Sequence record: MW349128.1
Strand: one strand, 5' to 3'
DNA: 64,000 nt
The notes below the pieces were generated by a model. The model saw only the letters and a program-made list of their open reading frames with translations. It was not told the origin of the DNA and did not search any database. Below, piece by piece: positions 1-62,190 of the stretch; the first letter of the stretch is position 1; every line of letters begins with the position of its first letter. The translations under genes and the position numbers were made by a program.

Positions 1-74
1 ATAAAAAAATAAAAAACAGAAATAACTCATAACTTATAAAGTTTTTTATTACCAAGAGGGAGAGTGTCGGATAA

Positions 75-1697
75 TTGAGTAAATACTTAAGTAAAGTTAC
101 AAAGAACATCAACGAAGACATTAGCAAAAAAGAACCATTTAACGAAGACGTAATTTATTTCAGACAAAATGAAAGTTTAGAAAAAATCATCTCAGATATT
201 TATCGATCAGTAGAATTTATTAAAGGAATTAAATTCTTAGATTGTAAAGTTGTTTCACCAAGTCAGGTTTATGAATATAATCAAATGACAGATAAACAAC
301 TTAAATCTAAAGATTATAGAAAAATCAATGTTGAAGAATCTAAATTACTGGAAGTTCAAATTACAGTAGAATTTGAAGATTCAGAAGGTAATAAAGAAGA
401 ATATACACACAAATTAGATTTCCCTGAACTTATTGAAGGTCAATACTACTATATCAATAATAACAAATTTTTCCCAATTCTACAATTAGCTGATGCTGAA
501 TTTTATAAACCAAAAGCTAGTACTGTAGTAATGAAAAACTTATTACAACCACTATCAGTTAACGGATCTAAAAAAGACACTATTATGGATGACGATAATA
601 AGATGTCTAATTTCCAAAGAGGAAGAACTCTATATCTAGAAGTGTTCAATAAAAATAAGAGTGTTCCAGCATTTATGTTCTTTGTTGCAAAAATGGGATT
701 TGACGAAACATTTGAATTTTTAGAAATTAAAGACCATTGTGAAGTAATAGATATTAATGATGATAAAGAAGATAATTACTATTACTTTAAAATTAATAAT
801 AAACTTTCTTTAAAAGTTGAAAAAGAATGGTTAGATGTTGATGATCGTTATAGAAATTCTATGATCCTTTGTATTAAAGATTTATTCAAAGGAATGAGAG
901 CTGGATTAGATAAAATATACGATAGAGAATTCTGGTTAAAGGCTTTAGGTTCTATCTTCAGTGGTTCAACTAATATTGACACTAAAATAGATAAAGCGAA
1001 TTCAATGATACTTTCATTTGATCGTATATTAGATAGTCGTACTCAAGCTATATCACGATTAGAAAAAGAAGATAAAGAATCAACTTATCATGTGGTTAAA
1101 TACATGTTTAAGAACTTTGATAATCTTAACTTATTAGATAATACAGATTTAGCTAATAAACGATTAAGAGTATTAGAATACTTAACTTATCCACTGAATA
1201 GGAAAAATTCTGATACATCTTACCGTATGATTAACTTCTCAGATAAAAAACGTACTATTAAAAACCTTAAAGGTTTATTCTCAGGAGTACCTAGAGATTA
1301 TCTATTGAAAACTATTGGAACTTCTGATGGTATACGTTATTCTAATGCAGTTAATACAATTGATTTATTTACTAGAATTCTTAAAATGACTAAAGCAGGT
1401 CCACAATCAGCTGTAGACACTAGTAAACCATCTATTAGAACAATCAATATCAATAACACTTATTTCGGTAGAATTGATTTGATTGCTACTTCATCAAATA
1501 ATCCAGGTATTACTCGTACGTTAACTCCATTCTGTGAAGTTAAAGATCCTGGTGAGAATGGTTCATTCTATTTTGAAAATAAACCTAATATCAAAGAAAT
1601 TGAAGATATTGAAAATATTGATAAATTAGAGAAAGAAAATGATGATCAGGAAGTTGTTATGGACATTAAAGAAATTGTAGAAGAAGGAGAAGATTAA
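75..1697 (+). CDS. rpoB: Phage multisubunit (non-virion) RNA polymerase beta subunit, N-terminal part
   Basis: YYYINNNKFFPILQL and GRIDLIATSSNNPG correspond to the beta motifs G.FIING.ERV..QL and GRICPIETPEGPN. It resembles the AR9 nvRNAP beta-N subunit from memory. TTG start after a GAGGGAG RBS. Confidence 0.85.
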   Translation: MSKYLSKVTKNINEDISKKEPFNEDVIYFRQNESLEKIISDIYRSVEFIKGIKFLDCKVVSPSQVYEYNQMTDKQLKSKDYRKINVEESKLLEVQITVEFEDSEGNKEEYTHKLDFPELIEGQYYYINNNKFFPILQLADAEFYKPKASTVVMKNLLQPLSVNGSKKDTIMDDDNKMSNFQRGRTLYLEVFNKNKSVPAFMFFVAKMGFDETFEFLEIKDHCEVIDINDDKEDNYYYFKINNKLSLKVEKEWLDVDDRYRNSMILCIKDLFKGMRAGLDKIYDREFWLKALGSIFSGSTNIDTKIDKANSMILSFDRILDSRTQAISRLEKEDKESTYHVVKYMFKNFDNLNLLDNTDLANKRLRVLEYLTYPLNRKNSDTSYRMINFSDKKRTIKNLKGLFSGVPRDYLLKTIGTSDGIRYSNAVNTIDLFTRILKMTKAGPQSAVDTSKPSIRTININNTYFGRIDLIATSSNNPGITRTLTPFCEVKDPGENGSFYFENKPNIKEIEDIENIDKLEKENDDQEVVMDIKEIVEEGED

Positions 1698-1700
1698 GTT

Positions 1701-3373
1701 ATGGTTAGATTTTTACTCAAGAAAAAGGATTTAGAAAATGTTCCAGTTGTAACTAATCATGAATCAATTGATAAGAAAGGTGATTTCACTGAAGATGGTA
1801 TCTTCAGTGAGAAAATCTTTGGTCCTGATTCAGAAGCAGATAATATTACTAATGAAGCTATTGTAGATTTAGGTAATAATTATATTTTAAATCCGTTAGG
1901 TTATGAACGTGTTAAAAAATTAATTGGTAATAAAAGATTCCAAGAAATTATTAGTTCTGAAAAACCTATTGATGAAAATGGTAATGTAATTGAACCTGAA
2001 GATGATCATAACTCTTATATTGGTTTAATTGAATTTAGAAAGAATTTCTTAAAAATTCTTAAAGAAGAAGTTAAACGTGAAAAACGTAAAACTAAAGATT
2101 ACAATAGAGTAGTACAATGGTATTTATCTGATTTACTATTCCAAAATTATGTAACTGTATTTAGTCCTAAATTAAGACCTGCTACAGTTAATAAAGCTAC
2201 TAAAACTTTTAGACATTCTGAAATTAATAAAGATTATAATTTATTAATTGCTCATAGTAATAGTATTAAAGAACTTGATAGACATTATACAGATGATTCA
2301 GTAGAGTTACAAAAATTAAATCTATTAAGTAAAATTCAAGATGATAGTATTAATATTAGTGATCGTGTAATTAATGAGAATATTAAAGGTAAAGGTGGAA
2401 CTATTCGTAAATTACTAATGGGTAGTCGTGTTGGTTTTTCTGCACGTTCAGTAATTGTTCCAGCACCTGATCTTAAATTAAATGAAATTAGATTAAATTA
2501 TACTATTTTCTTAGAAGTTTATAAACCTATCTTAGCAAATTTAATGTATGTAACAGAAAATATTCCTTTAGCTAAAGGTGAAGAAATATTAGACAGAGCA
2601 CTAGATACATTTAATCCTAAAGTATATAAATATATGAGAGAACTAGTTGATAAAACTGAAAATGGAATGAGAGTTATTTTAAATAGGAATCCCAGTATTA
2701 GTGAAAGCTCAGTTCAAATATTGAAAATTAAAGATATTATTCAAGATATAGAATCATCAGTAGTAGGTATTAGTAATAATATACTTGCTGGTATGGGTTA
2801 TAAAGGTAGCCTTTCATTATAGTGATATAATGTCAAAAGAATTTTAATTGCTGAGAAGATTATTAAATTAATCAGCATCGATCAAAATGATTGTTCAACG
2901 ACTAAATAAATTCACTCACTAATATGAGTTTGATATAGTCTAATCTTCATAGAAAAATCTCTATGAAGTTAATATACATGGCCGATTAAATAATAGTCGC
3001 TTTAAATTGAGAGATTTATAGAAAAGAATATTAATTGCTGAGAAGATTATTAAATTAATCAGCATCAAGTTAATACAATTTGTTCAACGACTAAATATAT
3101 TCTACCTTAAATGGTAATGATATAGTCTCGTCTATATGATAATATTTATATAGATTAAGATAAACGTATGATGGTGATACTTTAAATATTATAGCACTAT
3201 TTTCAGAAGAACAATACGAACAGTTAAAAGTTCAAGATCCAGTAAATCAATTAATTTCATATAATGATGGATTATTTAATAGAACTTACTCGCTTAATAA
3301 AGACTCACAAATAGCTGTTTATTTACTAAATAACCCTAAATCAAAAAATGTAGGTATTAAAGCTAGTGAATAA
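1701..3373 (+). CDS. rpoC: Non-virion RNA polymerase beta' subunit, N-terminal catalytic part. Spliced: join(1701..2798,2981..2986,3167..3373), 436 aa
   Basis: Motifs EDGIFSEKIFGP, LMGSRVGFSARSVIVP and LNRNPSI are present. Removing two group I introns restores ATG GGT GCC GAT TAT GAT GGT GAT = MGADYDGD (the NADFDGD motif) followed by TLNII...LLNN. Confidence 0.9.
2799..2980 (+). ncRNA. Group I mini-intron R1 (182 nt, no ORF) in RNAP beta'
   Basis: P1 GGU/UAU pairs with GUAGCC, with U-G at the splice site. Core motifs: ttaattgctgagaa (P), aatcagcat (Q), gttcaacgacta (R), gatatagtc (S). P3 gaattt/aaattc. Ends ...tacatG. Confidence 0.9.
2981..2986 (+). other. 6-nt micro-exon GCCGAT (Ala-Asp of the RNAP catalytic ADYDGD motif)
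   Basis: It lies between the terminal G of R1 and the P1 splice site of R2, and it supplies exactly the two missing motif residues in frame. Confidence 0.85.
2987..3166 (+). ncRNA. Group I mini-intron R2 (180 nt, no ORF) in RNAP beta'
   Basis: P1 CGAU/UA pairs with UAGUCG. P, Q, R and S motifs are present. P3 gaatat/atattc. Ends ...taaacG before TAT GAT GGT GAT. Confidence 0.9.
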
Positions 3374-3381
3374 GTAATTTT

Positions 3382-3408
3382 AATGGATAATCTTTATGAT
3401 TATCCATT
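3382..3408 (+). terminator. Probable intrinsic terminator after rpoC-like gene
   Basis: Stem aatggataatc/gattatccatt followed by a T-rich tract. Confidence 0.6.
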
Positions 3409-3444
3409 CTTATTATACTTTATAAATATGGAGGATTTTATAGA

Positions 3445-4020
3445 ATGATAAAATATAAAACGAATAATGAAAAGAATTTAATCGATATGGCTGAAAAATC
3501 GTTAGATATATTTTATGAAGAAATTTATAAAGAATTACTTAAGATTGATCAGGATTATATTAATCAAGATATTATTAATGATATTATAAAAGAATCTAAC
3601 ATTTTTAAAGATAATTCTAAAAAACATATTAAAAAGATTGTTAACAATGATATTAATAAAGTTGTAAGTGTAACTTTAACTACAACACATTATGAAATAT
3701 CTAGATTTTTATGTAATACTTTTGCTGAAAGACTTAATATGGTTTTAAATGCTTTATATAGAGTTAATAAAGGAACTTTAGGACATAAATATGAAAATGA
3801 ATCATTAGGAATAAGTGGTACTTATGATATAACTGATGGAATTAATACGTGGAAAAACGAATTAATTTCAGAAATATATAATACAACTAATTTCTTAGAA
3901 AATGTCATTAAAAGTAGAATTAGAAAATATATTAGAAGTAATTTTAATTATAAAAAATTAGATAATACTGGTGCTTATACATTTAACAATAATATTTTTA
4001 TTGATAGACTATTAAATTGA
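3445..4020 (+). CDS. Hypothetical protein
   Basis: 191-aa ORF with GGAGG RBS. Confidence 0.7.
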   Translation: MIKYKTNNEKNLIDMAEKSLDIFYEEIYKELLKIDQDYINQDIINDIIKESNIFKDNSKKHIKKIVNNDINKVVSVTLTTTHYEISRFLCNTFAERLNMVLNALYRVNKGTLGHKYENESLGISGTYDITDGINTWKNELISEIYNTTNFLENVIKSRIRKYIRSNFNYKKLDNTGAYTFNNNIFIDRLLN

Positions 4021-4668
4021 ATGGAGAAATGCGACATGAATAAACGACAAAGAAAAAAGTTAGAAAAAGAAATTAAATTAGAAAACTCAAATAACGAAAA
4101 AATTATAGATTTGCCAAAAAATAATATTAAAAAGGATGATTCAAAAATGACTAAAAAACAAACAACTACTAAAGGTACACCAAAATTAACTAAAGAACAA
4201 GTTCACTTTATTGCTGGTTTAATCGATAAAGGACATGGTAATACTTACATTTTAAAAGAATTCAAAGAGAAATATGGAATTGAAAGAAAAACTCACACTA
4301 TTACTCATATTCGTAGAGCTGAATATTTTGGACATTTAACTGAAGATTATAGATTTGCTAAAGAAGGATATCCTACATTTAACGAATATAAGAAAATTTT
4401 ACGTGGAGACGATGTTAAACCAAGTAAAGTAGAATTAGCTGTAGAAACTGTAGTTGAATCACCTACAGTAGAGAAAACAAAAGAAGCTGCAGAAGGTCTT
4501 AAAAATAAAACAGAAGAAAAAGCTAAAGATATTAAATCTAAAATGCAAAATGTTCAAAAAGATCCTGAAACTGGTAAAGAATATCGTGATAATGTAGATA
4601 TTAAAAAAGCAGGAAAACAAGAATCTATCTTTGATAAGATTGTTCGAAAAATTATTAATCTATTATAA
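4021..4668 (+). CDS. Hypothetical protein, possible helix-turn-helix DNA-binding domain
   Basis: KLTKEQVHFIAGLI...EKYGIERKTHTITHIRR resembles phage HTH segments. The remainder is Lys/Glu-rich. Confidence 0.55.
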   Translation: MEKCDMNKRQRKKLEKEIKLENSNNEKIIDLPKNNIKKDDSKMTKKQTTTKGTPKLTKEQVHFIAGLIDKGHGNTYILKEFKEKYGIERKTHTITHIRRAEYFGHLTEDYRFAKEGYPTFNEYKKILRGDDVKPSKVELAVETVVESPTVEKTKEAAEGLKNKTEEKAKDIKSKMQNVQKDPETGKEYRDNVDIKKAGKQESIFDKIVRKIINLL

Positions 4669-4682
4669 TATAAAAGAAAGAA

Positions 4683-5744
4683 GTGTTAATCTACATGAGT
4701 AAATACGATTTAACTTTATACCATCATTTAAAACAGAATGTTAATCCATGTAGATTAACTTCTTCTCAAGATGAAACAATGGTTAGATGTCCATTTTGTG
4801 GTGATTCTAAAAAATCTAATAAATCAACACATATGTATATTCAAAATAATACACCATTTAAATATTTCTGTCAGAGATGTAATGCTTCAGGAGTTATGAA
4901 TAGTAAAGTATTAGAAATGCTAAACTCTAATCAAGCTGATATTGGTAGTTATATTAATAGTGAATATAATAATTATTTATCTAACTTAAATAGAAAATAC
5001 GGTAAAAGTTTTATAGATAGAAATACTAAAATATTAGATTACTATCCAGATCAATATAATGAATTAGAAATAGGAAAAATTAATTATATCAATGAAAGAT
5101 TAGGAATTAATATTAGTGAATCAGATATTGATTTATATAAACTGATATTAAATATAAATGATTTCTATAGAAAAAATAATTTTGATATGGACAATACGCT
5201 TCAAATAAATACATTAAATCAAAATTATTTTAGTTATATGTTAAATGATAGAAACACTATAAATTGTAGAAAAATGTTTAATGAAGTTACTGGTAGAAAA
5301 CACTTTAAACAAAAGATATTTAAAAATCTAGCAGAAGAAAGTAATAGATTTTATTCAATCACGAATAATTTGGCATTGGATCAAAATGTGTATAACATTC
5401 ATATAGCAGAAGGTTTCTTTGACATTATATCTATATTTAATCATATTCATAATAGGGAGATAAATGACAATGATTTATTTATAGCTAATAATGGAAAAGG
5501 ATATAAATTTGTATTTGATTATTTAAGTAAATTAGGTTTACTTAATATGAATATAAATATTTATTCAGATAAAGATGTTAAATTATCAGATTATAAAAGT
5601 TATAGAATGTTGGGCAATTCAATTGCAGTTAAACTTAATGATGCTAATATTTATTACAATTTACATGAAGAAGAAAAAGACTTTGGAGTTCCTAAAGAAA
5701 GAATTAAATTATCAGATCCAATATTATTTAGTAGTATTAAATAA
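4683..5744 (+). CDS. DNA primase (Zn finger plus TOPRIM)
   Basis: N-terminal CPFCGDS...YFCQRC zinc-binding motif. TOPRIM-like IAEGFFDIISI and YSDKD. Confidence 0.8.
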   Translation: MLIYMSKYDLTLYHHLKQNVNPCRLTSSQDETMVRCPFCGDSKKSNKSTHMYIQNNTPFKYFCQRCNASGVMNSKVLEMLNSNQADIGSYINSEYNNYLSNLNRKYGKSFIDRNTKILDYYPDQYNELEIGKINYINERLGINISESDIDLYKLILNINDFYRKNNFDMDNTLQINTLNQNYFSYMLNDRNTINCRKMFNEVTGRKHFKQKIFKNLAEESNRFYSITNNLALDQNVYNIHIAEGFFDIISIFNHIHNREINDNDLFIANNGKGYKFVFDYLSKLGLLNMNINIYSDKDVKLSDYKSYRMLGNSIAVKLNDANIYYNLHEEEKDFGVPKERIKLSDPILFSSIK

Positions 5745-5750
5745 GAAATA

Positions 5751-5763
5751 AATATATATTATA
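5751..5763 (+). promoter_or_regulatory. Putative early promoter motif (A)TATATATTATA. Other copies near 7783, 8791, 10131, 14658, 18222, 19461, 21987 (variant), 62328 (variant) and 43833 (minus strand)
   Basis: The same motif is repeated upstream of accessory gene blocks, usually followed by a hairpin and an RBS. It resembles the TATATTAC-type early promoters of phiKZ-related phages. Confidence 0.65.
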
Positions 5764-5816
5764 AATAGGTAATGAGCAAATATTATAACGCTCATTACCT
5801 ATATTAAATTATTAAA

Positions 5817-6344
5817 ATGGAGAGTGAAATGGATATGTCAAACAAACAAGAAATTTTTACATTTGAAGAAATATTTAAAGAATTAACGGATTTTCAAACA
5901 AGTAGTAAATTGGAAGAATTTCCTAATAAGAATATTTTAAAAGGTATATTAGAGAATATCAGTAATAAGAGAGATTTAGAAAATAATAAAATGTATATAA
6001 GTATCAATATTAATAATTCACTAAAAGAATTAAAGAACATTGAAGATAATATAATTGATATCTTCAAAGATAATGAAGTTAATGAAACTGATAAAGAGAA
6101 TATCAGTACTTTATTAAAAACATCAAGTGATATTAAAACAAATATTAATAAAGATGATTATAAATCAGTATTAATATTAGAAACATCTTTAGATGAAATT
6201 ATTAATAAAATTAATAAAGATGAATTTAATAATAAAGATCTTAAAGAACTTTATGTATCAACTTATAATAATTTATCAGTAACATTAATGTCATATAAAT
6301 TACTTAAATTAATAGACGGATTTGACAAAATTAAAAACGGATAA
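5817..6344 (+). CDS. Hypothetical protein
   Basis: 175-aa ORF after an early promoter. Confidence 0.7.
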   Translation: MESEMDMSNKQEIFTFEEIFKELTDFQTSSKLEEFPNKNILKGILENISNKRDLENNKMYISININNSLKELKNIEDNIIDIFKDNEVNETDKENISTLLKTSSDIKTNINKDDYKSVLILETSLDEIINKINKDEFNNKDLKELYVSTYNNLSVTLMSYKLLKLIDGFDKIKNG

Positions 6345-44991: not shown

Positions 44992-47556
44992 ATGAAAGAG
45001 AGGATTTCAATGGCCATAGAATACACTGATTATAAGAACTTCAGTAAAGATGATTTAAGAAAATACAATCCTCTTTATTTTTATAAAGCCTTTACTGAAG
45101 AAGATATAGAAAATTTAGATGATATAGTTAAATTCTGTCAAGGTTTAATAATAAAAGATCAAGAATTTGCAGATAGATTAGAATCAAATGATTCTATGAT
45201 GGAGTCAGATTTATATATTAGAGCTAAAGAAAACACTTTAGATGATTACTATTCAGTATTTGATAAAGATAGTATTTTAAGAAACTATAAAGAACGTAAT
45301 CCATACTATGGAAAATTACAAAATATATATGATATTGATCCATATGTATCACGTACAGCAAATGATTTTGATATTATTAAAATAAGTAACCATACATTGG
45401 ATAAAAAAGAAGAATCATTATTATTAGAAAGTTATTCTGAAGCTCTTAATTATTTTAAAAAAGTAACACATACTAGAGCTTTTAATAATCAAGTTTATTA
45501 TAGAGAAATGTATTATATGTATTTAATTAATGCAACTATACATAGATATATAAACAAAACAATGTATAGAGTATTTGATGTTGATAGATATACTAAAAGA
45601 GATTTAAAGAATGCTTTCATTTCTAATGGACTTGATTACTTTGATGATTTCCCTTTAGAATATCAAAGAAGAACATACAAACGCATAAATGATTTAATTC
45701 GTAATAAAGGCACAAATGAAATATTTCCAATTATAGAAGATATATTCTCCATTAACTCCATAGACATTAATAAATATTATTTGGCTAAACATGAAGATGA
45801 TCTAAAGTTTTATAAAACAAATGTAAATGATAATCTTGATGTATACAATGATAATCAATACGGTTATAATGAAATCATTGATCTTGATCCATACTGGAGA
45901 AATACTAAAGAAGAAGTTATGGATAAAGCATTTAATGTAATACAAACTAAATATCTTTCTACCGATGCTGTTATAGATATAATTAATAATAGTAAATCTT
46001 TATCATTCTTATACAGTTTAATTAACTTAATGAAAGAAGATAAAGATATTATTGAAGATGATAGCTTTAATATGACTAACTCAAGAATCAGTTCTAGAAA
46101 GTTTAATGTTTTTGATGGAATTGTTACACTTAATACACTTGTCATAAATTATATTAAATGGAATGATAGAATCAAGAATGATAAGAATATGAATATTTAT
46201 GGTTATAATTTTAATGCAGATATTAAAGATACCGTAGATGATATTCGTAGTTATATTTATTCCAGACAATTTGATAAATCAGATTACACTGATTTTGCTA
46301 GAGAACTAAATTTCCTTAATATTAAGAAATTTAAAAATAGAAATACGCTAAGCTATGAAGATATTGTTAAAGAATATGAAATGTCTGATTTAGCTCAAAG
46401 ACAATTTAAATTTATTTCAGAAATAATGACCGGTATAAATGGTTCTACGCAATTAGAATACTATATTGAAAATGATTTAATTATAGATGGAATGAGATAT
46501 TTGTGGACACAGATATCTAAACCTGAAAGAGAATTTGATTTTAAAAATATATCTTACTATAAGAACTTTATGGAAATATACAAAAAATTTTTAAATGTAA
46601 TGATTCATGATGGTCGTATAAATAAAGAAGATGTATATTTAATTATGATAGAAGATAATTCTATTGATAAAGATATTGATGAATTTGTTAAAGTTATGAA
46701 TGTTAAGTTTTTAGATAAATCTTATCAAGATTATAAACAAAATAAAAATGAAGAAAATATAGATAATTTAGTAACATCTATAAGAAGATCAATAGATTAT
46801 TCAATTAAGAATAAATTATACACTCCTAAAAAGCAAATAACTAGATATCCAGCTTTAAATTCTTACATCAGTGATATATTAGCTTACAGTGATTCTGATA
46901 AAGATCTTATTAACATTTATGATATTATTGAAATGTATAAATATAATGAAGAATTTCGTAAAGAATTAGAAGAGTTAATATATAATTCAAATGATCCTCA
47001 TTTACGAAAAAAATTTACTAATCTCCATAAACAGCTATTTATAACTAATTCTAGTAATGATATTTTTAAAGGTTTTAAAACTTATTCAGATTATCTTAAA
47101 TTTAAAGAACCTGATTTGTATTATTATACAGTTGTTGAAAGTGAAATTTATGATGAAGATGTTTTTGATAGAGAAAATATTTTTAGAGAAAGAATATTTG
47201 AATTAGTAAGTAGTATTGATAATCATCTTAATCTTAAAGAACAGTACTTCACAAATAGTAATTTTGTAGGTGTTGTTAATTTTATTAGAGATTATATTAC
47301 TATATTGATAACTCTATTCAAATCATATACAACTGATTTAATTTATACAAGTCTATTATTTAAATTGGATGATAAATTTGAAAATAGTATTCATTTAATT
47401 GATGAAGGAAATATTAAATATACTGGAACTACAAAATATGTAGATAAGATTAATACATTAGATAATAGAAATATAACTGATAAGATCATCAGAAAAGAAA
47501 ATATTGAGATGAAAGACAATGTTAACATTTCAATAATCAAAAGGGAGGAAAATTAA
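44992..47556 (+). CDS. Large structural protein, probable baseplate component
   Basis: 854 aa with a late promoter at 44967. LIRNKGT resembles baseplate wedge KGT motifs. Confidence 0.55.
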   Translation: MKERISMAIEYTDYKNFSKDDLRKYNPLYFYKAFTEEDIENLDDIVKFCQGLIIKDQEFADRLESNDSMMESDLYIRAKENTLDDYYSVFDKDSILRNYKERNPYYGKLQNIYDIDPYVSRTANDFDIIKISNHTLDKKEESLLLESYSEALNYFKKVTHTRAFNNQVYYREMYYMYLINATIHRYINKTMYRVFDVDRYTKRDLKNAFISNGLDYFDDFPLEYQRRTYKRINDLIRNKGTNEIFPIIEDIFSINSIDINKYYLAKHEDDLKFYKTNVNDNLDVYNDNQYGYNEIIDLDPYWRNTKEEVMDKAFNVIQTKYLSTDAVIDIINNSKSLSFLYSLINLMKEDKDIIEDDSFNMTNSRISSRKFNVFDGIVTLNTLVINYIKWNDRIKNDKNMNIYGYNFNADIKDTVDDIRSYIYSRQFDKSDYTDFARELNFLNIKKFKNRNTLSYEDIVKEYEMSDLAQRQFKFISEIMTGINGSTQLEYYIENDLIIDGMRYLWTQISKPEREFDFKNISYYKNFMEIYKKFLNVMIHDGRINKEDVYLIMIEDNSIDKDIDEFVKVMNVKFLDKSYQDYKQNKNEENIDNLVTSIRRSIDYSIKNKLYTPKKQITRYPALNSYISDILAYSDSDKDLINIYDIIEMYKYNEEFRKELEELIYNSNDPHLRKKFTNLHKQLFITNSSNDIFKGFKTYSDYLKFKEPDLYYYTVVESEIYDEDVFDRENIFRERIFELVSSIDNHLNLKEQYFTNSNFVGVVNFIRDYITILITLFKSYTTDLIYTSLLFKLDDKFENSIHLIDEGNIKYTGTTKYVDKINTLDNRNITDKIIRKENIEMKDNVNISIIKREEN

Positions 47557-50923: not shown

Positions 50924-52258
50924 TTATTTAAAGTTTCTATAGAAATCATCAAGTCCATTAAGAACAGATTCTTCTAAGAAAACTTTAATAGTTTTATTAC
51001 TTTCTTTAATTGAAGCTAATTGAGATCCTTTATCGTAAATGATATTAGATTCATCAGCTTTATCAAATCCCATATCTTCAGCGATATATTTGATATTGTC
51101 TGAATTTTCTTTAATATAAGTTAAAACTTCTCTAGGAGAAAATTCTGTAACTTTACCGTTAGAAAACATATCAATTGATTCATTAACCATTTGTAAATCA
51201 CTAGTATTGTAATTATTATGATTCTCTGAAATTATATTTTGGATATAAGAATCTTGATGTGATGGAATTACACGTTATCTTAACTATATGATTTTCATAT
51301 AGACGAGACTATATCTTCCTAATTTATATTAGGTAATATATTTAGTCGTTGAACGGAATTTAATCCGATGCTGATTATCTTAATAAAGATTTCCAGCAAT
51401 TAATATTATTTATACTAAGCAATAATTTTTTACCCAGTCATACGTACATCTTAGCTATATGGTTTCCATATAGACGAGACTATATCATACTCTTAGTAAG
51501 AGCGAATATATTTAGTCGTTGAACAACTTGTATTAAGTTGATGCTAATTGGCTTAATTAAACTTCTTAGCAATTAATATTCTTTTTCATTATATATCACT
51601 ATATAAAGCTGCTATAATTTAACAGATTAATCTTAAAGGTTTAGTAACTTCTACTTCACCATTAGGTTTTCTTTCTATTTTACTAAAACCACGCATTGAG
51701 AAAGATACATCAGATTTTTGTCCAATTAAACCTTTCATATCCTTACCAGCTGATGTTTGAGCTGTTTCTACTTCTCCCATTAATTTATTACCATTCCACC
51801 AAGTTCTAGTGATAATATGAGAAATATTACGTTGATCAATATACATTTGACGTTTAGGTTCATCACTTAAAGGATGACCTGCAAATTATTATTCTTTATT
51901 ATTTTAATAAAGATTAGACTATATCATCTAGGTTATATATTTAGTCGTTGAACAACTTGTATTAAGTTGATGCTGATTACTTTAAATAAGATTTCAGCAA
52001 TTAATATAATTTAACGTGAGCCATTTTAACCTAAAACTCACCATAAAAAGTTCTTCTTGCTAATTTTTCTTGTACTACTGGACTATCTAAACCACTTTGG
52101 ATAACATCTTTACGATAAACACGACCATTACGGTTTTGTCTATCAGCTTCTTGTAACTCAGCAATGAATCTAACTGATTTATTATTATCTTGAACTACTT
52201 CTGGTTGAGAAGTTGTATTAGATTCATTAATAATGTAAGCTTTAATATCTTTAGACAT
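50924..52258 (-). CDS. Prohead core protease (T4 gp21-like). Spliced: complement join(52036..52258,51622..51881,51432..51442,50924..51272), 280 aa
   Basis: Motifs LQEADRQNRNGRVY, GESGHP, SFSMRG and CYDWVVIPSH are contiguous only after removing three group I introns. The exon sum of 843 nt is in frame. Confidence 0.88.
51273..51431 (-). ncRNA. Group I mini-intron PC (159 nt, no ORF) in protease
   Basis: P1 ACUGGGU/GCUUAGU; P10 GUAAU/AUUAU. P, Q, R and S motifs present. Ends ...taacG. Confidence 0.88.
51432..51442 (-). other. 11-nt micro-exon TATGACTGGGT (Y-D-W-V)
   Basis: Lies between the terminal G of PB and the P1 site of PC, and restores CYDWVVIPSH. Confidence 0.85.
51443..51621 (-). ncRNA. 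Group I mini-intron PB (179 nt, no ORF) in protease
   Basis: P1 CUGU/UA with UAGCAG. P4 covaries (ttgcta/ttagca). R and S motifs present. Ends ...gtacG. Confidence 0.88.
51882..52035 (-). ncRNA. Group I mini-intron PA (154 nt, no ORF) in protease
   Basis: P1 GUGAGU/GCUCAC with U-G; P10 CA/UG. P, Q, R and S motifs present. Ends ...aatttG. Confidence 0.88.
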
Positions 52259-57092: not shown

Positions 57093-60000
57093 ATGAAGAC
57101 TATGGCTATAACAAAATTAAAGAAAAAAATTTATTACGATTATAAAACTAATAACGTAAGCTTTTTAAGAGTTGCTAAAGAACTTAAAGATAATAATATA
57201 CAAAATTATGGTCTACCATTAACTCTATATGATAAGAAATTAATTGGCGTTGATCCTTGGGATGAAGATTTAGATAATGAAATGAAAACTCGTGTTATTA
57301 GGGAAGCTAAACTTAATATATGGTTTTATTTAAGAGAAGTTATCAGAGTTCCAGTTCCAGGTGGTAAGGTAATGTATGAACTTCATAGAGGTAACTTAGC
57401 TATGACGTTTTGTATGCTGCATAATTTAGATACTGCAATAATGTTACCACGTCAGCACTATAAAACATATTCTGCAGTATGTTATTATTCATGGATTATG
57501 TTATTGGTAGGTAATAACTATACAATGTTATTTACACATAAATCATACTCGGACACTACTGAAAACCTTAAAAGATTAAAAAATCTATTCAAAGAGAAGT
57601 GTTTACCTGAATATGTATTAGCTAACTTTGGAGATAAAAATGATAGAGATAAAATTAATGAATTTTCTTTAGCAAGTAATAACAACACAATAAAAACAGT
57701 ATCACCTCCAACAAATGCTGAGAGTAAAATACGTGCTCTCATTAAACTCTATTAACTGCTGAAAAAGATACTAAACCAATCAGCATCAATCAAATTGATT
57801 GTTCAACGACTAAATATAGAGATAATTAATATTATAAGATATAGTCTAGTGTGTATGAATATCATACAATGTATTACGGCAAACAAAGCAGGAAGAGGTA
57901 GCACCGTATGTAGATGCAGTGCATAAAGATTTTTAATTGCTGGAAGACTAATAATGAAGTTAATCAGCATCACTTTAATTAGTGTTCAACGACTAAATAA
58001 AATCAATTTTAATAATTTTTACTGTTAACATTCCTTTATCAGTACGATAACGGAGGGATAAAATGCCTAAAGGTGTTAAAAGTAAAGAAAAATTCATAGA
58101 ACAAAAAAATAAAACTTTTAAAGAAATAAAAGATATCAATGGAGATAAATTTGAAATACTGGGAGAGTATAAAAATTCTAAAGAACCAATTAAATGTCAT
58201 TGTAATATATGTGATAGAGATTTTTTCTTACCTACTGAAAAACTAAGATTAAAAAGAAAATTCTGTAATAGAAAAGATTGTAGATATTCAGAAAAACCCA
58301 AGAATTCTAAAGGTAAAGAAACTTTTTTAATAGAATTAAAAGATAAGTTCGGATTTAATTATACTTATATTGAAGGATTCAATGGAATGAATAAAAAGTG
58401 TAGATTCCGTTGTGGAAAATGTGGAAATATAAGATATTTTGCAAAGCCTTCTACTCTAATGGATAAAAGAAAGAAGTATAATTCAGTAAACTGTAACAGA
58501 TGTATAAATAATGAAAATTATATCATATTAGATAGTCAAGAATTATCTAAAAAGACAACAGAAGAGTTTCAAGGTGAATTAGATATGATATTTGGATATA
58601 ATAAATTTAATGTGTTAACTGAATATACTAGGAGCAAAGATTATATCTATTTGAAGAGTAATGACTGTGGACACAAATTTAAAACGAGACCAGATGATAT
58701 ACTTAAAAGAAAAAGATGTAGTGTATGTTCTAAAAGTATAGGAGAAATTGCCATCATTGAATTACTTCAAGAGAATAATGTAGAATATGAGAATGAAGTT
58801 ACTTTTGAAGGATCTAGTTTTAGATTTGATTTTTATTTTAAAAAAATAAATACTGTAGTTGAAGTAGATGGAAAAGGTCATATAAAAGGTTATGGAAATT
58901 TCATTAATGATAAAAGAAACAAAAGCAAAAGAACACCTGAAGATATAAAAAAATTAGATAATGAAAAAGATGAATTTATAAGAAGCAAAGGAATAAATAT
59001 GATACGTCTCCCTTACCAGAATAGAATAAATGAAGAATTAATTATCCCTATGAAAAAATTATTAAAATTATGATATAGTCTGATCTGCATGGATTATCAT
59101 GTAGTTTAACGTAAATGACCTATGGTTTGGCTTGATGAGTGGGCGTTTATACCGCATAATCAAGTAATGTTTGAAGCGATGAGTAAAAAGGCTCCATCTT
59201 TATAGAAATATAGATGATGAATAATATTAACTGCTGAAAAGTTTAAAAACCAATCAGCATCATTAAATAATGTTCAACGACTAAATTTATTAAATCTTAA
59301 AAAGATTATGATATAGTCTGATCTGCATGGATTATCATGCAGCTAACATAAATGACCAGCAATAAGTACAGCTTCAAGAATTGCAAAAGAAAATGGTTCT
59401 CCTTATGGACTTCTTATCACAACTACACCTAAAATGACTGGGTGAAGATAAATTAAAATTTATCTTAAGGACTTTATTAATTGCTGAAAGGTCCTTAGAG
59501 CTTAATGAGCTACAACGTGACTGGCAACAGTGAGCGTGATATGCTTAAAAATCATTAAGATTGGAAAATCAGCAGCTAATTTTCAATTTAATAAATTATT
59601 AAATCAATAATGAACAACTCTTTATACAAAAGATGTAGGAGTTGGTAATTTTGGATTTTTATGAAAAATTAAATAAAAAATTTGATAACAGTATAATAAC
59701 AAAAGAAAAATATATAAACGGCAATGAAAAGATTAAATTCTATTGTAAAAATTGTAAAAATTATTTTTATTCTAAACCTAGAAAAATTATTGAATCATCT
59801 TATAAATCATGTCATTTATGTAGGAAAAGGGAAAAAGAAAATATATTTAGGAATAATCTCATTAATATGATAAATAAAGAAATATATGAAATTATTGAAA
59901 TGAAAGATCCTATAAAAAATAATGAAAAATTTTCTTTAAAACATAAAGAATGTGGAAATATCTTTTCTATATCAGTGAGTAATTTTAAAAAAGGAAGAAA

Positions 60001-62190
60001 ATGCCCATATTGCTCAAATAAGCCTATGAAAAGGGATCAAAATTTCTTTTTAGAAAAAATAAATAATATTGATTCAAGTTTCTTAAAAGAATATGAATTA
60101 AAAAGCAATTATATAAGCGTTAACGAAAATATTAAAATTAAACATAAAGAATGTGGAAATATCTTTAATACTACCCCTAATAGAATTTATAGAGGTAATA
60201 GATGTAGTATGTGTTCACATAAATCTGATAAATATAATTTTAAAGAGGTAAAGAGTATAATAGAAAAAGATGGAAAATTTAAACTTTTATCTAATAATTA
60301 TATAAATAATAAATATAAATTAAAAATAAAATGTCTTAACTGTGGTAATATACAAGAGAAAAGTTTAGTTACATTTCAAGATAAAAGAAATAGAAAATGT
60401 ATATGTGAAAAATATTCTTTACCAATTCGTTATATAACAAATTTTTTAATAGATAAAAATATAAATTTTGAGCTAGAAAAAAGATTTGATAATTGTAGAA
60501 ATATTAGACCTTTACCCTTCGATATTTTTATAAATGATTTTAATATTCTAATTGAATATGATGGGGAACAACATTTTAAACCAATATATGGTATAGAAAA
60601 ACTCAATAAAACTAAAATAAATGATGAAATAAAAAATAATTTTTGTAATAAAGAAGGAATAGAATTAATTAGAATAAACTGTTATGATAATTATGAAGAT
60701 AAAATTGAAAATTTAGTTCAACGACTATCGAAAGTTGAGTATACATCGTGAGGATATATACAATATAAATGAGTAGAGTACAGCCAAGCGGTTAGTTTTT
60801 AAGTGATATTAGCTTAATATAATTCTATTAAATGGAAACATAAAGACGTGTATATTAACACATATACGTAAGATATAGTCTCAACGTTTAGGGAAAACCT
60901 AAAGAAGTTCATAAGAGAACTGGTATAGATTAGCGATCTATATTGAAGATTTTGAGTACTCTCGACACATCTCAAGGGCAATTTTTCTTTCAACAAATGA
61001 ATGAAGCAGCTCAATGGAATGAAAAAATATATGATTATTTTATTGATAGTGAAGAAGAAGGAAATTCTAAATTAGAAAAATACATGGAAGATAATTCAAA
61101 TAATGAATTCATGTATATAGAATATTCATATAAAGAATTAGGTAAAGATGAAAATTGGTTAGAAAAACAAAAGAGACAAATTGGTTCTTTAGAAGCTGTT
61201 AAACGTGAGATATTATTGGAATGGGCTTATAGTTCTGATGATTCATTATTCTCTGAAGAACAAATGACTGAAATATCTATGTATGCTAATAAAGAAATAT
61301 ATAATACTCTTGAATTTAATATTGATGGTAGAACTTATTATGTAAATATGATTAAATATATGGATAATATTACAGAGAAAAATTGGCTTATTGGTATTGA
61401 TATGTCTGGTGGTTTAGGACGAGATAATACAGCGTTTACTGTAGTGGATCCAGCTACTTTGGAACCAGTAATGACTTTTAAAAATAATGTAATTAATGGA
61501 CCTACATTCAGAAAATTAATTAAAGAATTGGTTAGTTTCTATATACCTAACGCTATATTAATACCTGAACGTAACTATGCAGGTTTAACAGTAATTGATC
61601 ATATGATATCTTATGATGGTTTAGAATCTAATTTATTCTATACGCTTAAAACTCGTGTAGCTGAAAAGCAAGTAGAAAATAAAAGTTTATTTAATGAAAT
61701 GTCTAGATATAGCAAAACTGAAAAAGTTAAAAAAGAAACTCGTAGATATGGTATTGATACAACTAAAAAATCTCGTGATATAATGTTAAATGAAATATTA
61801 TCTATGCTTGTTGAAGAAAAACCACATTTAATTAATAATAAACCACTTTTCCAAGAAATCAAATCTTTACAAATGATTAAAGGACGTATTGACCATCCAC
61901 CGGGAGGTCACGATGACTTAATGATGTCTTATTTATTCTGTTTATATGCGTATTACTATGAAAAAGATATTAATAAATTTGTAAAAATTAAATATGGTTC
62001 TAAACTCTCACCTAACAGTGAAAATGCAGAAGGAATGAAAAAAGAACAAGAAGCTAGAAGAAAAGATATTGCTTCAATTAAACGTATCAATAGTGTTATT
62101 GAAGGAAATGATATGAGTAATTCTATATTTGGTCAACAACAAAAACCAATGGATAACAATAATAAACGTATTATGGATTTATTCAAATAA
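57093..62190 (+). CDS. terL: Terminase large subunit. Spliced: join(57093..57725,57879..57907,59118..59184,59356..59430,60955..62190), 679 aa
   Basis: Walker A-like LPRQHYKT, then AGRGSTVP, Walker B VWLDEWAF, motif C LITTTP and nuclease IGIDMSGGLGRD and HDDLMM. The central motifs become contiguous only after removing four introns. Confidence 0.88.
57726..57878 (+). ncRNA. Group I mini-intron T1 (153 nt, no ORF) in terminase
   Basis: P1 UGAGAGU/GCUCUCA; P3 ctctat/atagag. P, Q, R and S motifs present. Ends ...ttacG. Confidence 0.9.
57879..57907 (+). other. 29-nt micro-exon (ANKAGRGSTV)
   Basis: In frame between T1 and T2. Confidence 0.85.
57908..59117 (+). mobile_element. Group I intron T2 (1210 nt), mini-intron-type core with a homing endonuclease ORF in the P8 loop
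   Basis: P1 GCACCGU/GCAGUGC. R motif lies before the ORF and S motif overlaps its stop codon. Ends ...aaatG. Confidence 0.88.
58063..59073 (+). CDS. Intron-encoded putative homing endonuclease (Cys-rich repeats plus Vsr/DUF559-like nuclease domain)
   Basis: Multiple CxxC motifs; C-terminal FRFDFYF...VVEVDGKGH...IRLPY. Confidence 0.8.
   Translation: MPKGVKSKEKFIEQKNKTFKEIKDINGDKFEILGEYKNSKEPIKCHCNICDRDFFLPTEKLRLKRKFCNRKDCRYSEKPKNSKGKETFLIELKDKFGFNYTYIEGFNGMNKKCRFRCGKCGNIRYFAKPSTLMDKRKKYNSVNCNRCINNENYIILDSQELSKKTTEEFQGELDMIFGYNKFNVLTEYTRSKDYIYLKSNDCGHKFKTRPDDILKRKRCSVCSKSIGEIAIIELLQENNVEYENEVTFEGSSFRFDFYFKKINTVVEVDGKGHIKGYGNFINDKRNKSKRTPEDIKKLDNEKDEFIRSKGINMIRLPYQNRINEELIIPMKKLLKL
59185..59355 (+). 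ncRNA. Group I mini-intron T3 (171 nt, no ORF) in terminase; 3' boundary anomalous
   Basis: P1 GAUG-AGU/GCU-C-CAUC. P, Q, R and S motifs present. Frame requires the exon to resume at CCA 59356, which makes A59355 the terminal base. Confidence 0.8.
59431..60954 (+). mobile_element. Group I intron T4 (1524 nt), full-size phage IA2-like, with a homing endonuclease ORF in the P6 region
   Basis: P1 CACCU/GGGUG; P10 AGU/ACU. Extended P5, aatcagcagc, gttcaacgactatcg, gtacagccaagcgg (P7.1/7.2 region), aagatatagtc and several P9 helices. Ends ...ttttG. Confidence 0.88.
59642..60751 (+). CDS. Intron-encoded putative homing endonuclease (Cys-rich repeats plus Vsr/DUF559-like nuclease domain)
   Basis: Repeated KHKECGNIF...CxxC; C-terminal LPFDIFI...LIEYDGEQHF. 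The 3' end overlaps the intron R motif. Confidence 0.82.
   Translation: MVILDFYEKLNKKFDNSIITKEKYINGNEKIKFYCKNCKNYFYSKPRKIIESSYKSCHLCRKREKENIFRNNLINMINKEIYEIIEMKDPIKNNEKFSLKHKECGNIFSISVSNFKKGRKCPYCSNKPMKRDQNFFLEKINNIDSSFLKEYELKSNYISVNENIKIKHKECGNIFNTTPNRIYRGNRCSMCSHKSDKYNFKEVKSIIEKDGKFKLLSNNYINNKYKLKIKCLNCGNIQEKSLVTFQDKRNRKCICEKYSLPIRYITNFLIDKNINFELEKRFDNCRNIRPLPFDIFINDFNILIEYDGEQHFKPIYGIEKLNKTKINDEIKNNFCNKEGIELIRINCYDNYEDKIENLVQRLSKVEYTS

Follow-up and report, generated by a model that had tools for sequence, protein, structure and literature searches.

Introduction

In the gene orf142 of the Staphylococcus phage Twort, a 23-nucleotide (nt) exon between two similar group I introns of subgroup IA2 (I2 and I3) is skipped, and a composite 'single large ribozyme' was proposed to explain the skipping (Landthaler and Shub 1999, as summarized in PMC10136302). 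The same paper tells of a 34-nt exon skipped between tandem group I introns in the 23S rRNA of Coxiella burnetii, and of a 24-nt exon skipped through a single large ribozyme in engineered tandem Tetrahymena introns. Here we describe a related arrangement in Staphylococcus phage Machias (GenBank MW349128.1), an AR9/PBS1-like jumbo phage of S. aureus, where the gene for the N-terminal part of the beta-prime subunit of the non-virion RNA polymerase (nvRNAP beta'-N) appears to be interrupted by two introns, R1 and R2, with a micro-exon of six nucleotides between them. The analyzed stretch of DNA, which we call the window, is bases 1-64000 of Machias, and its first 6 kilobases (kb) are 100% identical to positions 1-6000 of the record; coordinates are those of the window unless another sequence is named.

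The likeness to Twort lies in two closely similar small group I introns, 74% identical overall in Machias and with an identical block of 36 nt, that flank a short exon in a Staphylococcus phage. The exon has 23 nt in Twort and 6 in Machias, and splicing and skipping in Twort are experimental results, whereas the Machias case is known from its sequence; the micro-exon of Machias would encode a catalytic residue, whereas none is known from the exon of Twort. Coxiella differs in its rRNA host gene, in introns of different subgroups and in the longer exon. In placozoan mitochondrial cox1, as in Machias, a micro-exon between two independent group I introns restores an indispensable codon, and there it was long missed by annotation, but that exon is 1 nt long, the introns are mitochondrial, large and of group IB, and the evidence comes from RNA sequencing (PMC5436844); Machias would add a phage mRNA with minimal introns of a multi-copy family.

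Other comparisons come from jumbo-phage RNA polymerase (RNAP) genes. The nvRNAP beta'-N gene of AR9, g270, is orthologous and has the same catalytic motif, which its intron splits as DYDG/D (GGT/...G/GAC; a slash within a sequence marks an exon boundary). This single intron, about 880 nt long, encodes the HNH homing endonuclease g271. By sequence it is of a different family from that of R1 and R2 (GACUAUCGAAAA...GAGUAGAGUACA type), and it lies 9 nt downstream of the site of R2; AR9 has no micro-exon, all three of its Asp codons being on ordinary exons. An intron with a homing endonuclease also occupies the AR9 site in PB50, which is closely related to Machias. In gp210 of PhiPA3 a group I intron also directly follows conserved aspartates of a jumbo-phage multisubunit RNAP gene, but this intron stands alone and encodes an HNH endonuclease directed against a co-infecting phage, and it lies in the gene of a virion beta-type subunit, at another motif and with no micro-exon (PMC11620839). 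IStrons are group I introns fused to an IS605-family TnpB element (PMC10690162). At other places in the Machias genome, three TnpB genes have a ribozyme of the R1/R2 family immediately upstream, but R1 and R2 themselves are bare ribozymes, with no open reading frame (ORF), no guide-RNA region and no tnpB or tnpA gene. The Machias locus is an extreme case of known things and not a new kind of system. In the literature, as far as its texts were accessible, we came across no shorter exon flanked by group I introns in a phage or bacterium, the shortest being the 23 nt of Twort and the 34 nt of Coxiella.

A six-nucleotide exon in the nvRNAP beta'-N gene

GenBank lists gene 002 of Machias as 'non-viral RNA polymerase beta-prime subunit, N-terminal', with a coding sequence (CDS) at 1701..2822 and no join. 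For many other genes split by introns the record does predict joins, and the authors of the genome report introns in several genes. An earlier note on this DNA, made from its letters alone, had read the catalytic motif as split into MG-AD-YDGD, and both the sequence and its translation are exactly as it claimed. On the plus strand, exon 1 (1701..2798; 1098 nt, 366 codons) ends in ...NNILAGMG, with ATG GGT at 2793-2798. The predicted intron R1 (2799..2980; 182 nt, ORF-less, guide GCCU) has an in-frame stop at 2820-2822 and is followed by the micro-exon GCCGAT (Ala-Asp) at 2981..2986. The predicted intron R2 (2987..3166; 180 nt, also ORF-less, guide GUCG) opens with an in-frame stop UAA and leads into exon 3 (3167..3373; 207 nt, 68 codons and a stop at 3371-3373), in which TAT GAT GGT GAT occupies 3167-3178. 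The translation of exon 3 (YDGDTLNII...) opens YDGDTLNIIALF and ends in KASE, and both intervening blocks end in G (G2980 and G3166).

The three exons add up to 1311 nt (1098 + 6 + 207). The uninterrupted orthologue also has 1311 nt in six of six phages (Madawaska, MarsHill, SA1, S6, PALS_2 and DC4), all of which read GISNNILAGMGADYDGDTLNIIALFS, containing GMGADYDGD. The predicted ligated junction, ATGGGTGCCGATTATGATGGTGAT, is present contiguously in phage LY01 and is identical there to the joined Machias exons; the sole intron in the beta'-N gene of LY01 lies elsewhere, at LNR/NPS. A metagenomic allele (P0003, L026) is likewise uninterrupted at this site, and its first 366 residues are identical to exon 1 of Machias, while AH12 keeps both introns and the same GCCGAT. 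Any alternative boundary would break the frame or the conserved sequence GMGADYDGD. A complete intron-free copy of the gene elsewhere, which in the earlier note would have made this one non-functional, was searched for in the Machias genome and no second copy was found; nor does the sequence offer an in-frame start codon or a ribosome-binding site for exon 3. Thus, on sequence evidence, the two-intron interruption of beta'-N is confirmed as real, and it is unannotated. Frame, orthologue length, LY01 and the covariance model described below all agree with the claim of a 6-nt exon between two back-to-back group I ribozymes.

The residue carried by the micro-exon

The proteins of exon 1 and exon 3 were searched as separate pieces against solved structures. 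Exon 1 aligned to residues 21-367 of AR9 gp270 (7s01_d), with query residue 366 facing chain position 368, and exon 3 aligned to residues 371-426 (E 3.6e-8). Exactly two residues of 7s01_d were left uncovered between the pieces, 369-370 (Gly-Asp), so that the two flank 369-GD-370 on both sides, at the D-x-D-x-D motif, of the (N)ADFDGD type, that multisubunit RNAP beta' has in its double-psi beta-barrel domain. In AR9 gp270 the catalytic motif is 370-DYDGD-374, with three aspartates poised for catalytic Mg2+ (PMC9209446). These alignments support the assignment of the micro-exon Asp to the first position of the catalytic DYDGD, the equivalent of AR9 D370, and with it the proposal in the earlier note that the first metal-binding Asp is encoded on the 6-nt exon. 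The AR9 sequence given in that note, ALSGDYDGDVLNII, proves right when the AR9 intron is taken out. The Pfam domain RNA_pol_Rpb1_2 in exon 1 is cut short at the intron, the match covering positions 1-120 of the 166 in the profile. A scan of IMG/VR with the exon 1 protein returned no relatives.

Two complete group I cores

The Rfam model RF00028 aligns full length to both introns in a 601-nt search (R2 38.8 bits, E 2e-8; R1 26.8 bits, E 8.5e-5), and both are much shorter than its 253 positions. We aligned 14 copies of the intron family from the window and its relatives and counted pairing in P3, P4, P6, P7 and P9, the P3/P7 pseudoknot included. In this alignment (A1) 98.6% of the cells pair, vs 29-46% when the partners are slid by 1-3 columns; 15 of the 31 pairs change on both sides, and none of 500 shuffles reached any of the observed measures. 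Both-sided changes occur in five of the six pairs of P3 across the family (GAAUUU with AAAUUC, GAAUAU with AUAUUC, UUAUAU with AUAUAA, CUCUAU with AUAGAG, and others). P7 (GACUA with UAGUC) is invariant in 14/14 copies, and P8 was noted by eye, outside the formal helix count. A covariance model built from 17 copies, every beta'-N intron being excluded, gave R1 135.5 bits and R2 132.7 bits, with R2 the sole match in 47 kb.

All 19 curated members of the family have U at position -1, a terminal G and 3-8 exon base pairs (bp) in P1, and both Machias introns conform. In R1 the exon sequence GGGU pairs with the guide GCCU, with the wobble U2798-G2809 at the 5' splice site, in a P1 hairpin of 2795-2801 with 2806-2812 (minimum-energy fold -6.2 kcal/mol, z -2.05). 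In R2 it is CGAU of the micro-exon that pairs with GUCG, with U2986-G2996, in a hairpin of 2981-2988 with 2994-3000 (-3.5 kcal/mol, z -2.5) that takes up nearly the whole micro-exon. The terminal guanosines (omega-G) would be G2980 and G3166. The core conserved among group I introns is present in both: P3-P4-P6, P7-P8-P9, the P3/P7 pseudoknot, and the J6/7 and P7 sequences of the G-binding site. In R1 the 5' part of the core spans 2839..2913, where P3 (2839-2844 GAAUUU with 2908-2913 AAAUUC) encloses P4-P6 and the 5' strand of P7, and a core-motif scan places P7 at 2900-2904 (GACUA) and 2936-2940 (UAGUC). The corresponding part of R2 is 3026..3102, with P3 formed by 3026-3031 (GAAUAU) and 3097-3102 (AUAUUC) and again enclosing P4-P6 and the 5' strand of P7; its P7 strands are at 3089-3093 and 3123-3127 (UAGUC). 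All these elements are on the plus strand. The two introns are probably of an IA2-like subgroup.

The 36-nt block that R1 and R2 have in common, found as their longest common substring, runs through J3/4-P4-P5-P4' (2844..2879 in R1, 3031..3066 in R2). Among all fetched sequences, the whole of Machias included, the exact block is confined to this pair and its copy in AH12, which suggests local gene conversion. In a tree of 35 introns, most of it without resolution, R1 and R2 do not group as sisters; weakly supported as it is, this speaks against simple local duplication. The arrangement is not that of a twintron: two complete cores stand side by side, and the six bases between them are coding and required by every orthologue. 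No homing-endonuclease ORF fits in 180-182 nt, and we discarded a free-standing endonuclease beside the gene as the agent of mobility, the ORFs at 3445-4017 and 4021-4665 matching no endonuclease family in Pfam or PHROGs. The first of these neighbors, a 191-residue ORF directly downstream of the gene (3445-4020), is present in Machias and AH12 and absent from Madawaska, MarsHill, S6 and others; it had no significant match in Pfam or PHROGs and one sub-threshold Pfam match (E 0.005).

Probable splicing of the two introns and its alternatives

We think it very likely that R1 and R2 are two independent ORF-less group I introns, inserted into the codons of the catalytic motif with six bases between them, and that each splices itself. 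Each would use its own guide, the GCCU of R1 on exon GGGU and the GUCG of R2 on CGAU of the micro-exon, its own core (P3-P9 with the P3/P7 pseudoknot) and its own terminal G, and would be excised by two guanosine-initiated transesterifications. The two ribozymes would dock on the micro-exon one after the other, in either order, and exon joining would give GGU-GCCGAU-UAUGAU, read as GMG-AD-YDGD, in a full subunit of 436 residues that contains the junction-spanning peptide GMGADYDGDTLNII. By its sequence, unspliced or half-spliced RNA could not give the full-length protein, because R1 brings the stop at 2820-2822 and the UAA of R2 is in frame with GCC GAT.

The 3' splice site of R1 lies at the foot of the R2 P1 helix, and the micro-exon is nearly entirely the 5' strand of that helix. 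The two ribozymes would therefore act successively, and probably are not docked on the micro-exon at the same time. The earlier note had proposed that the six bases serve both ribozymes, and had taken this to suggest an ordered or coupled pathway. The shared use stands for P1 of R2, whereas for R1 the proposed P10 (GCC with GGU) amounts to 3 bp and is possible only with an offset of one base. An obligatory coupling, in which one ribozyme splices only after its neighbor or together with it, would be favored by the position of the micro-exon almost wholly inside the R2 P1 hairpin, by the R1 splice site at its base, by the overlap of one to three bases that this P10 would have with the R2 P1, and by a six-nucleotide tether that would seem too short for two folded cores of about 180 nt at once. 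However, local sequence suffices to form each P1, in whatever state the neighboring intron is; P10 ranges from 0 to 5 bp in register across the 19 curated members, being weak or absent in many, so that a requirement for it is unlikely and we dropped it as evidence of coupling; introns with either guide type occur singly at other sites; and both orders lead to the same ligated mRNA. Mutual exclusion in time is likely, yet it is distinct from a fixed order. Because both P1 helices are local, P10 is inconsistent and each guide type occurs singly elsewhere, a fixed order is not supported by the sequence, and we consider interdependence of the two ribozymes unlikely.

Skipping of the micro-exon would require a composite ribozyme, made of the 5' half of R1 and the 3' half of R2, that removes 2799-3166 and leaves a dead in-frame subunit without Ala-Asp. 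The precedents from Twort orf142, Coxiella 23S rRNA and tandem Tetrahymena introns, as told in the paper cited above, speak for it, and so do the identical P4-P5 block unique to R1 and R2, a chimeric P3 (2839-2844 with 3097-3102) that keeps five of its six pairs, and the R1 guide, which makes 3 bp in register with exon 3 (UAU) vs 0 bp with the micro-exon. Three-base pairings in AU-rich RNA are, however, near the chance level, and local folding during transcription would favor two separate cores. GCCGAT is kept in AH12 and matches the uninterrupted gene of LY01, and the skipped residue is the catalytic Asp (PMC9209446) in the sole copy of an essential polymerase subunit, so skipping cannot be the main route in a plaque-forming phage. 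As a main or functionally used pathway we regard it as extremely unlikely, while some skipping through a composite ribozyme is plausible. Since its product would lack the catalytic Asp and the gene is essential and in single copy, skipping can only be a side reaction unless it has a regulatory role, and a function for the isoform without Ala-Asp is speculation. A very improbable variant has the micro-exon as a cassette, with a composite ribozyme, made possible by the identical P4-P5 block, skipping it in a fraction of the transcripts; the full-length subunit without its first catalytic Asp would assemble into dead polymerase and thereby set the level or timing of late transcription. If true, this would be a functional alternative-splicing switch built only of group I ribozymes in a bacterial virus. 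The gene might also not be spliced at all, being either dead or further split, with pieces of 373 and about 68 residues translated separately. The GenBank CDS of 1701..2822 without a join would agree with this, as would the natural split of jumbo-phage RNAP genes into N- and C-terminal genes (PMC7598289). But neither an in-frame start codon nor a ribosome-binding site is found for exon 3, separate pieces would not include the first catalytic Asp, all core helices pair in both blocks, which are intact ribozymes, Machias is a viable isolate with a single copy of the gene, and the joins that the same authors annotated in many other Machias genes point to an oversight here. We give this explanation almost no credence.

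Several observations weigh against two independent self-splicing introns. Neither R1 nor R2 reaches the gathering score of RF00028 (50 bits), and a scan of the whole window at gathering thresholds came out empty, the introns appearing in Rfam only under an E-value threshold on the local region. P5 is minimal and peripheral stabilizing domains are not evident, so that efficient splicing may need a protein or chaperone, and while the sequence itself shows the anatomy, the homology, the covarying structure and the restored frame, self-splicing of such 150-190-nt introns in this phage group, like its order and any skipping, is something that we infer. The P10 of R1 in register with the micro-exon has 0 bp. 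No allele with R1 alone or R2 alone was found at the beta'-N site, the independence of the two there being argued from related introns at other sites. Finally, the tree of 35 introns has little resolution, and the guide classes described below rest on guide and P2 sequences, not on supported clades.

The intron family and its choice of sites

By motif scan, the core motif has 29 copies in the Machias genome. The window holds eight full-length ORF-less copies of 154-182 nt, and three weaker partial matches in TerL that adjoin the two endonuclease ORFs of that gene. Places that match the family number 21-28 each in Machias, AH12, LY01 and PB50 and 10-12 in Madawaska and MarsHill, and a search of the phage collection gave no match in the related phages S6, PALS_2, DC4 and SA1.

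GGU precedes the introns that have a GCC guide, such as R1 and the copies found in three virion-RNAP genes, and one of this type, vB_C_a, occurs singly after TATGGT. Those with a GUCG guide follow CGAU, several of them after the Asp codon of a metal-binding motif; examples are R2, the introns in gyrB and DNA polymerase, both of which occur singly, the downstream intron of the LY01 prohead protease and a virion beta'-N intron. The gyrB intron of Machias (L021 16996-17172) splits the Toprim motif as DAD/DDG, directly after an Asp codon (xxC GAT), and its flanks, TGCCGAT/GATGATGG, are almost those of the beta' site, TGCCGAT/TATGATGG. The DNA polymerase intron (Machias L018 about 45409-45590) likewise follows an Asp codon, in motif C (ID/TDS, ATCGAT/ACAGAT), as does that of the LY01 prohead protease (L015 2670-2853; YD/W). 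The string GGU GCC GAU holds both guide targets six bases apart, and this offers the simplest account of the back-to-back insertion. Presumably the choice of site is set by the guide, e.g., through reverse splicing. Most alleles with an empty site lack the needed U and have GGA, GAC or GGC instead; LY01 departs from this, agreeing with Machias over the 41 nt around the site, which would fit past co-conversion or precise intron loss.

The beta' catalytic motif is a hot spot for intron insertion, since AR9 and PB50 have their intron at DYDG/D and several metagenomic relatives are truncated there. The virion RNAP beta'-N gene of Machias (L019 about 1340-1494) is also split inside its catalytic motif, ADFDG/D, at the same relative position as in AR9 and PB50; the last exon base of this intron is apparently C and not U (GGC/), facing A in the guide. 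Three metagenomic relatives of the gene, distant as well as close (L023 4103-4490, L024 4106-4462 and L025 4196-4664), have a larger intervening sequence of AR9 type, only a few bases from the GMGx/D boundary. For these three, we found no junction that satisfied U at -1, a terminal G and the expected GxD reading together, and an Rfam search gave nothing at E <= 0.001.

Other short exons in Machias and its relatives

In Machias, neighboring copies of the family often enclose a short internal exon; such exons measure 6 nt in beta'-N, 11 nt in the prohead protease gene and about 29 nt in TerL, and two virion-RNAP genes have exons of 16 nt and 18 nt. The prohead scaffold/protease gene, on the minus strand at 50924-52258, has three mini group I introns, at 52035-51882 (154 nt), 51621-51443 (179 nt) and 51431-51273 (159 nt), the last two separated by the 11-nt exon TATGACTGGGT (51442-51432); GenBank gives this gene a three-piece join, though three introns imply four exons. 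TerL, at 57102-62190, has at least four group I introns (about 57726-57878, about 57908-59107, 59185-59354, and from about 59448 to about 60990), two of which carry endonuclease ORFs (58063-59073 and 59651-60751), and one of its internal exons is only about 29 nt long. It is deposited in GenBank as two separate CDS fragments, and the genome paper states that TerL could not be reconstructed; hidden short exons are probably behind this failure.

The prohead protease gene of LY01 (L015 2483-2853) contains a second 6-nt exon, TACGAT (Tyr-Asp), between tandem introns. BLAST aligns this tandem pair in one piece to R1-GCCGAT-R2 with 76.6% identity, though the gene is a different one. Outside the window, Machias has three IStron-like elements (L021 13895-15560, L020 41522-42987 and L018 14006-15461), whose TnpB genes have the Pfam domains OrfB_IS605, Cas12f1-like_TNB and HTH_OrfB_IS605. 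One of them lies in gyrB, between ...RHRSD and MYVGAIDG, so that a short first exon seems to be missing from the annotated gyrB CDS; another is inserted in a virion protein gene.

Significance

The beta'-N of the public record is truncated and without its catalytic motif, so that protein searches and phylogenies that use the CDS 1701..2822 are wrong at the active site, and exons of 6-29 nt lie hidden likewise in several further genes of these phages. In beta'-N the six bases carry a residue that is indispensable to the polymerase. The locus is a compact natural test system of about 400 nt, with two ribozymes of about 180 nt sharing one substrate strand, and it could address the order of splicing and the frequency of skipping, which have so far been studied mainly in engineered Tetrahymena tandems. 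The recurring GGU/ and CGAU/ classes give a testable picture of the guide-directed spread of endonuclease-free introns, of which Machias has about 29, with the CGAU/ insertions directly following Asp codons in RNAP, in the Toprim motif of gyrase and in motif C of DNA polymerase.

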